In this document: positions 18,620 through 22,131 of the stretch, in pieces
Position numbering within the stretch: position 1 is the stretch's first letter
How the letters are laid out: every line of letters starts with the position of its first letter
IMG/VR virus record: IMGVR_UViG_3300024239_000014
Location: 124,001 to 188,000 of that record
Strand: one strand, 5' to 3'
Length of the DNA stretch: 64,000 bases
Notes under the pieces: model-generated
Database searches by the model: none
Seen by the model: only the letters and a program-made list of their open reading frames with translations
What the model was told of the DNA's origin: nothing
Made by a program: the position numbers and the translations under genes

Positions 18620-18982
18620 TTACGTAACAGTATCCGCTACTTCGATGGTCACGTAGAGTTCGCAAGCGTCGTCGTAGTGGCTGTATTTCCGTTTAGCTGC
18701 ATTCGGGTCGTTGTAGTCGTAAGACTTAACGAGGTGTGCCATTTCAAGAAAGCCGGCAATTGCCTTCTTGACGTATGGTTCATTGCTGGTCAACCGGTCA
18801 CCAGGGTACAGACGATTTTTCATGCCGAGCAGCATGGTGTTCAGGTCATCCCACGCCTCACCTGGCGGGAATTCACCGCTGGCTACGTAGTACTTACACC
18901 AGGACCAGTTATCGATGTCGTAAGCGACTTTATCGCTCTTGAATTCGACTGTGACGCGATGAACGATTCCAGATTCAGCCAC
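18620..18982 (-). CDS. 120 aa paralogue-array member
   Basis: GEFPPG, PG, NEPYV and FLE motifs shared with 19002..19364; RBS GGAGG. Confidence 0.75.
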   Translation of the reverse strand: MAESGIVHRVTVEFKSDKVAYDIDNWSWCKYYVASGEFPPGEAWDDLNTMLLGMKNRLYPGDRLTSNEPYVKKAIAGFLEMAHLVKSYDYNDPNAAKRKYSHYDDACELYVTIEVADTVT

Positions 18983-19001: not shown

Positions 19002-19364
19002 TCAGGTTTCGCTGCCGACGTAAACGGTTTCCACCGTCAGGTCGAAGTTCCGGCTGCGGTTACTGAAAATCGCCCGCTTACCGTTCTCGGTGTCATCGAA
19101 CTCGTGACGCGAGATTTGGCTTGCGATTTCAAGGAACGCAGCATGGCAGGGTCGCACATACGGTTGGTTTTCTGCCAAGTTCTGACCTGGGACGACCTGT
19201 TCTGCCAACAGTTTCAGTTTGGCGACCAGGCGGTCTTTGGTCTTACCGGGCGGGAATTCGCCGGTAACGTCGTACGATGATTGCCAGAAGCCATTGTCAT
19301 TGAGGCCGACAGTTTCACCCTTGAAGTTGATGGTGACCTGATAAATCGGATTAGACATTCTCAT
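19002..19364 (-). CDS. 120 aa paralogue-array member
   Basis: GEFPPG, PG, NQPYV and FLE motifs; RBS AAGGAG (start may be 19358). Confidence 0.75.
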   Translation of the reverse strand: MRMSNPIYQVTINFKGETVGLNDNGFWQSSYDVTGEFPPGKTKDRLVAKLKLLAEQVVPGQNLAENQPYVRPCHAAFLEIASQISRHEFDDTENGKRAIFSNRSRNFDLTVETVYVGSET

Positions 19365-19378
19365 TCTCCTTGGAAGTT

Positions 19379-21337
19379 TTACAAACGAACACCACCGCCA
19401 CGCTGACGCGGTTTGAAGTTAAACTGGTTCACCGAAGCCACCAGCTCCTGAGCGGAACCCGTCAACACTTCAGAGCCCTTCCCTACTTGTGTCAGGCTTT
19501 CAGCGTTGGCATCGGACATCGCATTGATGCGGTTCATGTTCCGGGTGATTTCTTCAGCCACATGAGCCTGCTCTTGAGCCGCAGTGGCAATCATGGTGGA
19601 TTGGTCGGCCATCTGACGGACATTGCTGACGATGTCAGACAGCGCGCCAGAAACCTGCACCGCGCCTTCTTTGGTATCCTGCACTGTTTGACGGACAGAA
19701 TCCACGGCACGAACCGCGTTATCAGTCACCTGCTGCAGGGCTTCCACTGTACCGCGAATGTCAGCGGTAGATTGCTGAGTCTTCGCAGCCAGGCTACGGA
19801 CTTCGTCAGCCACCACCGAGAACCCGCGACCCGCTTCACCGGCGCGCGCTGCTTCAATCGCAGCATTCAATGCCAGCAGGTTGGTCTGGTCGGCAATTTG
19901 ATTAATTGCCTCAGCCGCACGTCCAATGGACACCACCTGGTCCACCAGCAAGCGCATTGCAGCTTCAGTCTGCGTGATGTTTTCCACGCCGCGTTCTGAC
20001 CCACGTACCGTCTGCTTGACGATGACGGCAGCATCGTTTACCAGCTTCTCCACACTACCGGCTAAGGCGCATGAGGTTTCGGTATTACGAGCCACTTCCA
20101 GTACCGTCTGTTCCATCTCCGTGATGGCTGTGGCGGCGGATGCGATCTCCTGTGCGGCAGTCGATGTATTGGCAGCGGTCTGCGTGGCGATTGAGCGATT
20201 CTTCTCCGCCGTCACCTTCACTTGGTCGGCGACGTCCGACACTGTGGCCATCTGACGCCGCAGGCTGGCCAGCGTTTGGTTCAGCGACGCCTTGAGCTCC
20301 CCCAATTCAGCTTCAAACTCCGCATCCACATCCCAGAGGTCGCCGCGACTCACGCGTTGCAACTCTGCTTGAATTTTACCAAGTGGTGAGGTCACCTGGC
20401 GTTTCAGGACAGCGATGACTGTAAAGGCAACTGCTATCATGGCGACTACGAAAATACCGCCGAATAGCTTTACCAACAACCACCCTTGAGTGAAGAGTTC
20501 ACTGCCGACTTCAGCAGACACCAAGAGCCAGCCCAGACCTTCGAGTTCCGATTGCTGGTACTGGTAATCCGGTGACGTACCTTGTTTCCTGCGGACATCG
20601 TAAAACGGCGCTTCTTTCCCGACCCACTGTTTGTTCTTCAGGTCGTAAACGTAAATACCGCCAGACTTGCCAATCTTGACATTCGACAAGGTAGTTACCA
20701 AGTCGTTCAAGGATTGGGTAATGTCCTGGCCTACGAAGGTAGCACCGACCACGTTGCCGTAGGCGCTAATCGGGCTGTAGGAGACCACGTACGGCGTTCC
20801 GAACAAGTACGTGATACCCTGGTAGTTCTGATTCGCCAGAAGTGCAGGATAAGCCGGAGATTCACGGCTGAGCATGGTACCCACGACCCGTTTACCGGAA
20901 GTATCCTTCAAGCTGGTACTGATGCGGATAAAGTCATCGCCATCGCGGACCACCAAGGTGCTCACCACGGAATCATCCATGAGTTCACGGAAACGGTCGA
21001 CGTAGAATTCGTCATTATTCATCCGTTCGCCATTGACGGCCATGATGGGTGTTTGGACGCCGTTGACGTCTTCCTTGGTTGCTTGGTTGACAATAGCAGT
21101 GTCAATTTCGATGAAGTTCCTGAACAGGACCTCAATCTTCTTGGCGCTATTGGCCATGGAGAACTCGTAGGTCTTAATCAGGTCACGTGCCTGGTCTACG
21201 AGCTGTTGTTGGGCTCCATGGGTTTCTTCTTTGAGTGACGTTTCCGTCACCTGGTACGATACTGCGGCGATAGCGCCGAGTACCAGTATCAGCACAGGGA
21301 TGACCCGTGCCAGGATTTTACTGCTAATTTTAGTCAC
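19379..21337 (-). CDS. Methyl-accepting chemotaxis protein (TM-Cache-TM-HAMP-MCP signalling domain)
   Basis: TM1; Cache_3-Cache_2-type region VRDGDDFIRISTSLKD..G.RVVGT.L.RESPAY.AL; TM2; HAMP SPLGKI..EL..VSRGDL..ELGELKASLN; tip QTNLLALNAAIEAARAGEAGRGFSVVADEVRSLA. GTG start, RBS GGAGG. Confidence 0.95.
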   Translation of the reverse strand: MTKISSKILARVIPVLILVLGAIAAVSYQVTETSLKEETHGAQQQLVDQARDLIKTYEFSMANSAKKIEVLFRNFIEIDTAIVNQATKEDVNGVQTPIMAVNGERMNNDEFYVDRFRELMDDSVVSTLVVRDGDDFIRISTSLKDTSGKRVVGTMLSRESPAYPALLANQNYQGITYLFGTPYVVSYSPISAYGNVVGATFVGQDITQSLNDLVTTLSNVKIGKSGGIYVYDLKNKQWVGKEAPFYDVRRKQGTSPDYQYQQSELEGLGWLLVSAEVGSELFTQGWLLVKLFGGIFVVAMIAVAFTVIAVLKRQVTSPLGKIQAELQRVSRGDLWDVDAEFEAELGELKASLNQTLASLRRQMATVSDVADQVKVTAEKNRSIATQTAANTSTAAQEIASAATAITEMEQTVLEVARNTETSCALAGSVEKLVNDAAVIVKQTVRGSERGVENITQTEAAMRLLVDQVVSIGRAAEAINQIADQTNLLALNAAIEAARAGEAGRGFSVVADEVRSLAAKTQQSTADIRGTVEALQQVTDNAVRAVDSVRQTVQDTKEGAVQVSGALSDIVSNVRQMADQSTMIATAAQEQAHVAEEITRNMNRINAMSDANAESLTQVGKGSEVLTGSAQELVASVNQFNFKPRQRGGGVRL

Positions 21338-21809
21338 GGTCTTCCTCCGGGATGCGGATGGGATTTACAAGGTAATCCAGCAGCAATGCTCGATTAACCT
21401 TTACGTCGGTGGGGTCGAGACTGAGGTCTATCAGAGACGGTACTCGAATAGCTACCTCATGTCGACCAGTCCAGGTTACAATTCGCGCCAATGGGATGTA
21501 GCGCAAGTTAGATGGAAGAGACTGGATGATTAAACCCGACCCCTTGCAGCGATAGCGGATTTCATACCGCACCAGCTCCACAGTATTCGTCAGTACTCGC
21601 TTAAGAGTCAGGACGTTCATGGGGTCTGAGACCAGTATCAACTTCGTCAGCGGCGGCGTGAGCCGAATGTCATTGAGCAGGAGGTTATGGACAGCACATT
21701 CCACAATGACACGAAAGTCCTGGAGTTCATGCCAGAAGAATTCGCGTAATGCCGGAAGGTACTGCTTTTCCAAGTCGTCTGTTCGCACGATGAAAACGGT
21801 ATCGGTCAT
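21330..21809 (-). CDS. Hypothetical protein translationally coupled to the MCP gene
   Basis: Its stop overlaps the MCP start (GTGACTAA). Confidence 0.7.
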   Translation of the reverse strand: MTDTVFIVRTDDLEKQYLPALREFFWHELQDFRVIVECAVHNLLLNDIRLTPPLTKLILVSDPMNVLTLKRVLTNTVELVRYEIRYRCKGSGLIIQSLPSNLRYIPLARIVTWTGRHEVAIRVPSLIDLSLDPTDVKVNRALLLDYLVNPIRIPEEDRD

Positions 21810-21872: not shown

Positions 21873-22028
21873 TCACTGTGTGATGTCGCAGTCGCAGTCC
21901 TCTTCGATAGAAGCGGCGGGAGACATTGACAAGACATCGGTGCTGTGGAGTACTACGCAGCCAATGATAGTGACGGCCAACAACACAATAGCCAGAAGGG
22001 TGGAAAGGGTGAGAGTGCGCTTAGCCAT
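21873..22028 (-). CDS. 51 aa signal-anchor peptide (not in ORF track)
   Basis: MAKRTLTLSTLLAIVLLAVTIIGCVVLHSTDVLSMSPAASIEEDCDCDITQ; RBS AGGT; first ORF after the promoter. Confidence 0.65.
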   Translation of the reverse strand: MAKRTLTLSTLLAIVLLAVTIIGCVVLHSTDVLSMSPAASIEEDCDCDITQ

Positions 22029-22060
22029 TTGGTTTACCTGTCGGTTAATGGGGTTAGGTC

Positions 22061-22076
22061 CACGTAGATGATGTAG
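22061..22076 (-). promoter_or_regulatory. Putative early promoter heading the MCP operon
   Basis: CTACATCAT-CTAC-GTG. Confidence 0.65.
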
Positions 22077-22101
22077 GTGTACAAGATAGTTGGTTTACGG
22101 C

Positions 22102-22131
22102 AAAAAAGAGGAGGGGGCTTCCCTCCTCTTA
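22102..22131 (-). terminator. Intrinsic terminator
   Basis: AAGAGGAGGG/CCCTCCTCTT stem followed by a T-tract. Confidence 0.75.

Follow-up and report, generated by a model that had tools for sequence, protein, structure and literature searches.

The minus strand of the window, by which is meant the whole 64,000-nt stretch of DNA analysed here (positions 124,001 to 188,000 of IMG/VR record IMGVR_UViG_3300024239_000014), encodes an intact chemoreceptor of 652 aa between phage genes. The features of the locus, all on the minus strand, are as follows.

22101..22130 (-), intrinsic-terminator-like hairpin AGAGGAGGG/CCCTCCTCT plus T-run, ending the upstream transcription unit
22056..22080 (-), promoter-like motif ACACCTACATCATCTACGTGGACCT (core CCTAYATC at 22070-22077), 740 nt upstream of the receptor start
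21873..22028 (-), putative 51-aa ORF, the first after the promoter-like motif, with a hydrophobic N-terminus and a lipobox-like IIGC
21330..21809 (-), 159-aa orphan gene whose stop overlaps the receptor start by 8 nt, a candidate partner
19379..21337 (-), chemoreceptor (MCP) gene, 652 aa, GTG start, stop at 19379-19381
21254..21316 (-), TM1 (about residues 8-28)
20483..21253 (-), periplasmic sensor (residues 29-285) with a complete membrane-distal Cache module (81-205) and a reduced four-strand membrane-proximal module (226-277)
20408..20482 (-), TM2 (about residues 286-310)
20258..20407 (-), HAMP domain (residues 311-360)
19412..20257 (-), signalling domain of 282 residues (361-642)
19778..19906 (-), hairpin tip (residues 478-520), the CheA/CheW contact region in characterised MCPs
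19382..19411 (-), non-conserved 10-residue C-terminal extension PRQRGGGVRL
19002..19364 (-), 120-aa gene 14 nt downstream of the receptor, paralogue of the next gene
18620..18982 (-), 120-aa paralogue

The sequence-only reading of this locus, a complete TM-Cache-TM-HAMP-MCP receptor in a jumbo phage, was confirmed as an observation. Pfam profiles identified Cache_3-Cache_2 (PF17201, residues 31-240, E 4.9e-43, profile positions 4-217 of 299 only; PF17202, E 3e-20), HAMP (PF00672, residues 311-360, 27 bits against a cut-off of 25) and MCPsignal (PF00015, residues 443-607, E 9e-38, 130 bits against a cut-off of 34.6), and the two TM segments are hydropathy peaks that lie within helices 4-76 and 278-330 of an AF2 model, giving class-I topology. 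The N-terminus aligns residue for residue with the ATG starts of the phage relatives, and a GGAGGA lies 5 nt before the GTG. The overlap behind the proposed translational coupling was also confirmed: GTGACTAA is present and the upstream 159-aa ORF ends 8 nt inside the receptor gene. As had been claimed, there is no xWxxF pentapeptide, and no CheA/W/R/B/Y domain was found in 65 ORFs of the window. The odd tail PRQRGGGVRL is real but is absent from all six other phage-clade members and from the bacterial relatives, the 70%-identical relative ending at FDFR, and it is not a feature of the family. Two further claims were only partly right. Flanking by paralogues applies only to the two downstream 120-aa genes (36% identity over 95 aa, E 1e-20), the first of which had no family hit. 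The early-type promoter is a recurrent motif, CCTAYATC, that occurs 10 times against 2.2 expected, 9 of 10 on the coding minus strand, 26-65 nt before start codons and often directly after terminators, and the same CCTATATCA lies upstream of genes in two other phages, L002 (which carries a related receptor) and L171 (a close relative without one), but its early timing is inferred and not shown. A sigma-70 scan was not above chance, with 8 found against 10.2 expected. The hairpin ending the upstream unit is one of five look-alikes on the minus strand, read directly and missed by the consensus scan. Rfam found nothing in the window, L002 or L171, and PADLOC found nothing.

The signalling domain has about 140 residues on each side of tip residue E501, that is 40-heptad (40H) length. 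It aligns to Pseudomonas putida PcaY (6s18) with only two small gaps, in TM2 and HAMP, and nearly gap-free to the CtpM model (346 residues against 351), whereas it is 27 residues, about 4 heptads, longer than the E. coli 36H receptor models Tsr, Tar and Tap, and it shows no indels relative to bacterial relatives. All 34 columns invariant in 93 relatives carry the family residue in this protein, and 30 of them lie within the tip IADQTNLLALNAAIEAARAGEAGRGFSVVADEVRSLA (residues 478-520), which is near-identical to that of PcaY and TM1143. One sub-lineage of the phage clade has AGNHGRGF instead of AGE(A/Q)GRGF at the very tip. The methylation-type helices noted before, AQEIASA..ITEMEQ and AQEQAHVAEEI, are present. 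Two exact matches to the methylation consensus occur (393-401 and 627-635) and E407 and Q590 are conserved, but the main N-arm pair, EE in bacterial relatives, is TE in the phage clade and the C-arm site deviates from the consensus, so adaptation may be impaired.

The sensor was modelled with high confidence (AF2 pLDDT 86-96 for residues 41-280), and its best matches in structure (Foldseek, target TM 0.67-0.74) and in sequence are the formate-bound single-Cache sensors 8py0 and 8py1. The residues contacting formate in 8py0 (T100, R111, Y160) map to T127, R138 and Y187, and R142/T145/T158 of PacF map to R138/T141/T154 (PMC11804620), all of them conserved in both phage sub-lineages. The suspected shortening of the second Cache module was confirmed in three ways, by the partial Pfam coverage, by a clade-specific alignment gap and by the model, where the proximal module has only four strands (226-277) and no helices. 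The receptor is thereby a reduced variant that has the membrane-distal sCache_3-like module but lacks the full membrane-proximal sCache_2-like module. Characterised Cache_3-Cache_2 receptors bind formate (PMC11804620) or lactate, propionate and pyruvate (bioRxiv 10.64898/2026.04.10.717710).

The contig carrying the gene is 249,640 bp and encodes phiKZ-like virion proteins (phrog_3222 and phrog_3004 at E below 1e-190), four phiKZ_IP internal head proteins and an nvRNAP beta-type subunit. Chimallin was not found in the 64-kb window, and two scans seeded with the chimallin of L002 and L171 did not reach this contig. Codon usage of the receptor gene matches the phage (RSCU correlation with other window genes 0.82 against a mean of 0.75). 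The receptor belongs to a phage-only clade of seven protein clusters (SH-aLRT 100), scoring at least 1042 bits within the clade against 340 for the best bacterial protein, and one member lies 7.5 kb upstream of a chimallin gene. The sister group includes a Vibrio bivalvicida receptor, although with support of only 92-94. In L002 the receptor lies next to chimallin, a divergent DNA polymerase and an RNAP subunit. The dN/dS ratio was about 0.03-0.15 in the sensor and signalling parts alike, being 0.14 for the window against L003 (a clade member), 0.05 for L002 against L006 (likewise) and 0.03-0.14 for the sensor alone; dS is near saturation for the informative pairs (pS 0.67-0.72) and these values are rough. 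L171 lost the gene by deletion, showing that it is dispensable in at least some settings. The flanking genes of the window showed no BLAST-level homology to those of L002 and L003, apart from a weak but confirmed link of the 159-aa gene. Its only library-wide relative, P0251 (E 1.3e-4), is 74% identical to the ORF that overlaps the receptor start in L003, so the pair is conserved. The 159-aa protein had no Pfam, PHROG, PADLOC or NCBIfam hit, and its AF2 model, made without an alignment, was unusable (pLDDT 33).

Other carriers were sought in several collections. Megablast of 17-24 kb of the window against 50,697 phage records gave no match. Of 18 tblastn hits of the receptor in phage records, all except the three Yong phages and three unannotated Pseudomonas Y phages were mislabelled bacterial contigs (Acinetobacter 'phage' MD-2021a with a cheW-MCP-cheA cluster), Salmonella WGS contigs, 2-4 kb fragments or transposon cargo on a P1-like element. 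In IMG/VR 229 contigs have MCP relatives; the best 80, surveyed together and not one by one, are mostly 10-70 kb prophage-type predictions, and none shares another gene with the window or has chimallin nearby. A partial sample from a genome-collection scan contained nothing above 37% identity, and a viral structure library contained no full-length phage receptor.

The interpretation offered by the sequence-only reading, a receptor inserted into host arrays to steer the infected cell, to alter flagellar rotation for exclusion or to feed Wsp/Chp-like pathways, is partly supported. The gene is phage-borne, conserved and under purifying selection in every domain with an unaltered tip, and a working receptor that plugs into host arrays is therefore the most economical reading. 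What the analysis demonstrates is the intact topology, the complete distal Cache module with its carboxylate-binding residues, the HAMP and 40H domains with the tip, the purifying selection, the phage-only monophyly and the phage-like codon usage. The remainder is inferred, and the explanation as a whole, that a lineage of phiKZ-like jumbo phages captured a working chemoreceptor from a bacterium long ago and has kept it, is held only as somewhat more likely than not. In this view the gene would be transcribed from the promoter-like motif together with the small ORF and the 159-aa orphan, and the protein would enter the host inner membrane, join the polar arrays through host CheW/CheA and report a short-chain carboxylate (formate, or a C2-C3 acid such as lactate, propionate or pyruvate) to the flagellar motor through CheY, with adaptation depending on host CheR/CheB. 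Provided that its signalling domain is compatible with the host's CheW/CheA, and that an infected cell still swims and assembles new receptors into arrays in time, the cell would gain or strengthen a taxis response that could keep it in, or move it to, places rich in fermentation products, either dense, active host populations or energy-rich niches, both of which would favour a large phage with a long infection cycle. Literature searches found no data on expression, localisation or behaviour for any phage receptor. Chemotaxis-driven transport of lytic phage with migrating hosts has been shown experimentally (bioRxiv 10.1101/2025.04.18.649568).

Among the alternatives, perturbation of host arrays regardless of ligand, with the receptor flooding or poisoning them and locking CheA on or off so as to stop or fix the swimming pattern, for example to immobilise the cell or to block superinfection by phages that depend on flagellar rotation, would agree with the conserved tip, the partly non-canonical methylation sites, the reduced proximal module and the lack of adaptation enzymes nearby. 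It is considered unlikely, since the sensor is under purifying selection as strong as that on the signalling domain and the ligand-contact residues are invariant in both phage sub-lineages, which a pure poison would not need; nor does exclusion by altered rotation explain selection on the pocket. About as unlikely is a sensor for the phage's own use, read out through a phage partner, such as the 159-aa protein, or through CheY-P to tune phage development, such as lysis timing or replication rate, rather than motility. The overlapping gene of no known family is conserved with the receptor in the L003-type phage, but the L002-type phages have the receptor without it, the 40H domain and tip are conserved exactly as in receptors that signal to CheA, and no phage output domain is evident.

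Input to a Wsp-like c-di-GMP or Chp-like type IV pilus pathway, changing surface behaviour or pilus display, is less likely still. Many hosts of phiKZ-like phages have several chemosensory pathways, but the alternative pathways use dedicated receptors and the cytoplasmic part here is most similar to the flagellar-pathway receptors PcaY and CtpM. Assembly chimerism and relaxed selection had been named in advance as grounds for rejection, and both were contradicted. Most MCP hits in viral collections are indeed prophage-type contigs, mislabelled bacterial DNA or transposon cargo, yet this gene has overlapping or tight junctions with phage genes on both sides, matches the phage in composition, has relatives in independent assemblies from six other samples, one of them next to chimallin, is at most 32% identical to any bacterial protein and is under purifying selection, making a chimera or recent neutral cargo very improbable.

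A broader reading, possible but held with less than even confidence, is that nucleus-forming jumbo phages steer the cells they infect by expressing their own ligand-specific receptor and so adding a phage-chosen taxis, here towards small organic acids, to the host's navigation system, that phage lineages reached this solution at least twice independently, and that it changes where progeny are released. Phages are known to reprogram host metabolism, but direct control of host navigation by a virus-encoded sensor has not been shown. A phage-specific receptor lineage kept under selection with a predictable ligand class, together with an independent counterpart in a cultured Vibrio phage, makes the idea of manipulated infected-cell behaviour open to experiment now. 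It also bears on how phages spread in structured habitats, where chemotactic host fronts are known to carry infections.

MCP-like genes in viral genomes have been reported at the level of annotation, in Nitrosospira jumbo phage roc1 and phage ripk2 (CheR, CheY and an MCP between them), among viral auxiliary genes for sulfate reducers and as PHROG 8572, without evidence of conservation, selection, ligand class, phage-specific lineage or tested function. The cultured Vibrio jumbo phage Yong XC31, which is phiKZ-like and has a known host, carries an unannotated full-length TM-sensor-TM-HAMP-MCP receptor with about 140 residues on each side of the tip. It is at most 39% identical to any bacterial protein and 31% identical to the window's receptor in the cytoplasmic part, and has a dCache_1 sensor of the PctA/PctB-like type, so that it is an independent capture and capture happened at least twice. 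The PcaY and P. aeruginosa CtpM signalling domains align nearly gap-free from HAMP to the C-terminus, but their sensor domains differ and the scores are far below the NCBIfam equivalog cut-offs (186 against 900 bits), so that the phage protein is not an orthologue of any named receptor. The Pseudomonas 658-aa Cache_3-Cache_2 chemoreceptors (e.g. PS417_27650, PFLU5957) and PacF of Pectobacterium atrosepticum share the sensor family, the R/T/T/Y pocket residues, HAMP and a 40H-length signalling domain without indels, with formate (PacF) or lactate, propionate and pyruvate as experimentally shown ligands, but they are only 28-32% identical, match the full-length Pfam profile and are separated from the phage clade by a long branch. 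The single-Cache sensors 8py0 (Oscillibacter ruminantium) and 8py1 (Asticcacaulis benevestitus) have identical formate-contact residues and have lost the proximal module completely, while the phage receptor retains a remnant of it, an intermediate state of the 'decreasing complexity' trend described in PMC11804620 and a natural example of a double-Cache sensor being trimmed towards a single module.

The receptor gene at 19379-21337 on the minus strand is an ORF of 652 aa, in which Pfam detected Cache_3-Cache_2 (residues 31-240, E 4.9e-43), HAMP (311-360) and MCPsignal (443-607, E 9e-38), and hydropathy gave two membrane segments at about residues 8-28 and 286-310. The GTG start is supported both by a GGAGGA located 5 nt upstream and by the N-terminus, which aligns residue for residue with the ATG-initiated relatives. 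The stop of the upstream 159-aa ORF lies 8 nt inside the receptor gene, in the string GTGACTAA, and the next gene starts 14 nt after the receptor stop. On the minus strand the order of features is as follows.
22130-22101, minus strand: strong hairpin plus T-run
22080-22056, minus strand: ACACCTACATCATCTACGTGGACCT, promoter-like motif
21873-22028, minus strand: 51-aa ORF directly after the promoter-like motif, with a hydrophobic N-terminus and a lipobox-like IIGC, which may be a small lipoprotein or membrane peptide
minus strand: 159-aa ORF, overlapping the receptor start
19379-21337, minus strand: receptor gene
19002-19364, minus strand: 120-aa gene of no known family
18620-18982, minus strand: 120-aa gene of no known family, tandem paralogue of the preceding gene (36% identity)

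The carrier, IMGVR_UViG_3300024239_000014, is a contig of 249,640 bp encoding phiKZ-type virion proteins (phrog_3222, E 1e-221; phrog_3004, E 1e-195) and a 'polymerase' that matches the nvRNAP beta-type subunits of 284 phiKZ-like phage records. The window also encodes four phiKZ internal-head-protein paralogues, thymidylate synthase and kinase, GIY-YIG/NUMOD3/I-TevI-type homing-endonuclease domains, and PHP, cpYpsA (SLOG), BRCT and Zeta-toxin-like/AAA_33 kinase domains. Core proteins are at most about 40% identical to those of any isolate and megablast gave no match, showing that this is a distant, uncultured relative. Chimallin is not present in the window and scans for it did not reach it on this contig. 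The receptor gene is compositionally at home, with an RSCU correlation with the other genes of 0.82 (gene mean 0.75), a tetranucleotide correlation of 0.79 (mean 0.73) and a GC content of 0.546 against 0.507 +/- 0.028. None of the 65 window ORFs has a CheA/W/R/B/Y domain.

Among 5.8 billion protein clusters the nearest relatives were the clusters P0002 (70% identical, 642 aa) and P0003-P0007 (36-38%, 631 aa), whereas bacterial receptors start at 31-32%. P0007 is located on a 31-kb contig, 7.5 kb upstream of a chimallin gene and next to the divergent DNA polymerase and an RNAP subunit typical of nucleus-forming phages, and P0003 and P0005 share its downstream genes. P0008 by contrast sits among ordinary bacterial genes. 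In a maximum-likelihood tree the seven phage sequences form one clade (SH-aLRT 100) on a stem of 1.25 substitutions per site, with two deep sub-lineages, and a profile built from the seven scored them at 1042 bits or more and the next protein at 340. Nei-Gojobori dN/dS was 0.14 for the window against L003 (a phage contig in which an ORF overlaps the receptor start), 0.05 for L002 (a contig carrying the receptor next to chimallin) against the receptor-bearing L006, and 0.28 for a near-identical pair. For the two diverged pairs the sensor alone gave 0.05-0.14 and the signalling domain 0.03-0.16. Synonymous sites are close to saturation and these values are therefore rough, but pN is far below pS throughout. 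The gene is therefore old in phages and is maintained as a whole.

Loss of the receptor was documented in a sister phage, IMGVR_UViG_3300027985_001318 (L171; 223,650 bp), whose chimallin is 79% identical to that of L002 and which is syntenic with it on both sides of the receptor locus. Here about 2.1 kb of L002 (L002:601-2682) is replaced by about 207 nt (L171:2427-2634), which end with a remnant of about 40 nt of the last codons of the receptor, outside any ORF. The receptor was therefore present in the ancestor of that group and was later precisely deleted, so it is useful but not essential. A further receptor is that of the cultured Vibrio jumbo phage Yong XC31 (L010:2705-4537; MK308674.1 207397-209229), whose best bacterial relatives are Vibrionaceae receptors of about 623 aa, one of them named PctB, at only 31-39% identity. 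It is 31% identical to the window's receptor in the cytoplasmic part and has a different sensor. The phage has the same RNAP subunit family, and its relatives are described as encoding multiple RNAP subunits and phiKZ-type sheath proteins (PMC7765460). This is a second, independent and equally old capture.

Records filed as phage, such as CAKLQH020000002.1, CAKLQF020000003.1, AFYI01000003.1 and AGRM01000003.1, and others, are in fact bacterial chromosome contigs, 'Acinetobacter phage MD-2021a' for example carrying a response-regulator, cheW, MCP and cheA cluster next to mdtC and dapE, and they inflate the counts of phage chemotaxis genes. A P1-like element (L173; MH445380.1 95801-97378) carries an 'aerotaxis sensor receptor' gene inside IS-flanked cargo, next to a beta-lactamase gene.

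From HAMP to residue 640 the alignment of the signalling domain to P. putida PcaY (6s18) has only two small gaps, in TM2 and HAMP, and the domain aligns nearly gap-free to the P. aeruginosa CtpM model. It is 27 residues, about four heptads, longer than the E. coli Tsr, Tar and Tap models, and about 140 residues lie on each side of E501. These are the dimensions of the 40-heptad (40H) class, which feeds the flagellar F6 pathway in Pseudomonas, Vibrio, Shewanella and relatives. All 34 columns that are invariant in 93 relatives are retained, 30 of them in the hairpin tip, although the P0003-P0007 sub-lineage has AGNHGRGF at the apex instead of the near-universal AGE(Q/A)GRGF. The evidence from the methylation sites is mixed, since E407 and the QEQ at 588-590 are conserved whereas the canonical EE of bacterial relatives is TE here. 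There is no CheR-tethering pentapeptide, and the C-terminal tail PRQRGGGVRL is unique to this copy.

AlphaFold2 with a 93-sequence alignment modelled residues 41-280 of the sensor at pLDDT 86-96, showing a long N-terminal helix, a complete distal alpha/beta module (81-205), a linker helix and a proximal module of only four strands (226-277), in agreement with the truncated Pfam match and with a clade-specific deletion in the alignment. The best solved-structure matches of the sensor are the two formate-bound single-Cache domains 8py0 and 8py1 (target TM 0.67-0.74; sequence E 1e-16). In 8py0 formate is held by R111, T100 and Y160 (PMC11804620), which align with R138, T127 and Y187, and R142, T145 and T158 of PacF align with R138, T141 and T154. 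All of these are invariant in the phage clade. Characterised members of this sensor family respond to formate (PacF; PMC11804620) or to lactate, propionate and pyruvate (bioRxiv 10.64898/2026.04.10.717710), the latter being the 658-aa Pseudomonas group that also dominates the bacterial hits found here. The predicted ligand is therefore most probably a short-chain carboxylate, without sequence alone distinguishing which one. The partly eroded proximal module fits the trend, described in PMC11804620, of this family losing the ligand-free proximal module.

The core of the promoter-like motif, CCTAYATC, occurs 10 times in the window against 2.2 expected (0 of 100 shuffles reach 10), and 9 copies are on the coding strand. 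Intergenic copies lie 26-65 nt before start codons and often directly after look-alike intrinsic terminators, of which five (GAGGAGG...CCTCCTC followed by T6-10) were found on the minus strand of the window at about 57214, 41280, 34104, 22110 and 7350. Three of these are followed within about 30-40 nt by the CCTAYATC motif, and the one at 22110 was missed by the consensus terminator scan. The same CCTATATCA precedes genes in the L002 and L171 phages. In RNAP-encoding jumbo phages only the early (virion RNAP) promoter motif is stated in a review to be identifiable bioinformatically (PMC7598289), and the early timing claimed in the sequence-only reading is thus a reasonable guess, but it is not shown. 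In the L002 group the receptor is preceded by about 700 nt without called genes (L002:131-827), partly conserved in the sister phage (L171:1894-2427), ending in a hairpin plus T-run and without any Rfam match, and there the motif lies after the receptor, so the regulatory setting is not conserved.

The 159-aa protein has no family hit, and its single-sequence structural model was unusable. Its only relative among 1.84 billion representatives, P0251 (E 1.3e-4), is 74% identical to the ORF that overlaps the receptor start in L003. The pair is therefore conserved in this sub-lineage, whereas the L002 group lacks it.

The observation in the sequence-only reading, a complete chemoreceptor gene within a jumbo phage, was confirmed, while its interpretation as a system acting on the motility of the host is partly supported. 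The simplest account of an intact, selected sensor joined to an intact, selected 40H output domain is a receptor that works as receptors do, through host CheW/CheA, which would add a phage-specified carboxylate input to the motility of the infected cell. The architecture, the phage-only clade and the purifying selection rest on the analyses themselves, whereas expression, carboxylate binding, signalling through the host arrays and any change in behaviour are inferred. Pure array poisoning does not explain the selection on the pocket, and coupling to Wsp/Chp-type pathways, also proposed in the sequence-only reading, is disfavoured by the similarity to flagellar-pathway receptors. A phage-private output is possible for the sub-lineage with the coupled orphan but has no positive evidence, and a chimera or neutral cargo is excluded on present evidence. 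The ecological pay-off is speculation; it might be holding the cell in energy-rich, fermentative, host-dense places during a long infection, or delivering progeny there. It is nonetheless consistent with experiments showing chemotaxis-driven transport of lytic infections (bioRxiv 10.1101/2025.04.18.649568).

No functional study of such a phage gene was found in the literature, but MCP-like genes in viral genomes have been listed before without analysis, in the Nitrosospira phages roc1 and ripk2, as auxiliary genes of viruses of sulfate reducers and as the unannotated PHROG 8572. New relative to these listings are a phage-specific, selected receptor lineage in nucleus-forming jumbo phages, a predicted ligand class, a trimmed double-Cache sensor, the documented loss in a sister phage and a convergent case in a cultured phage that makes the hypothesis testable.
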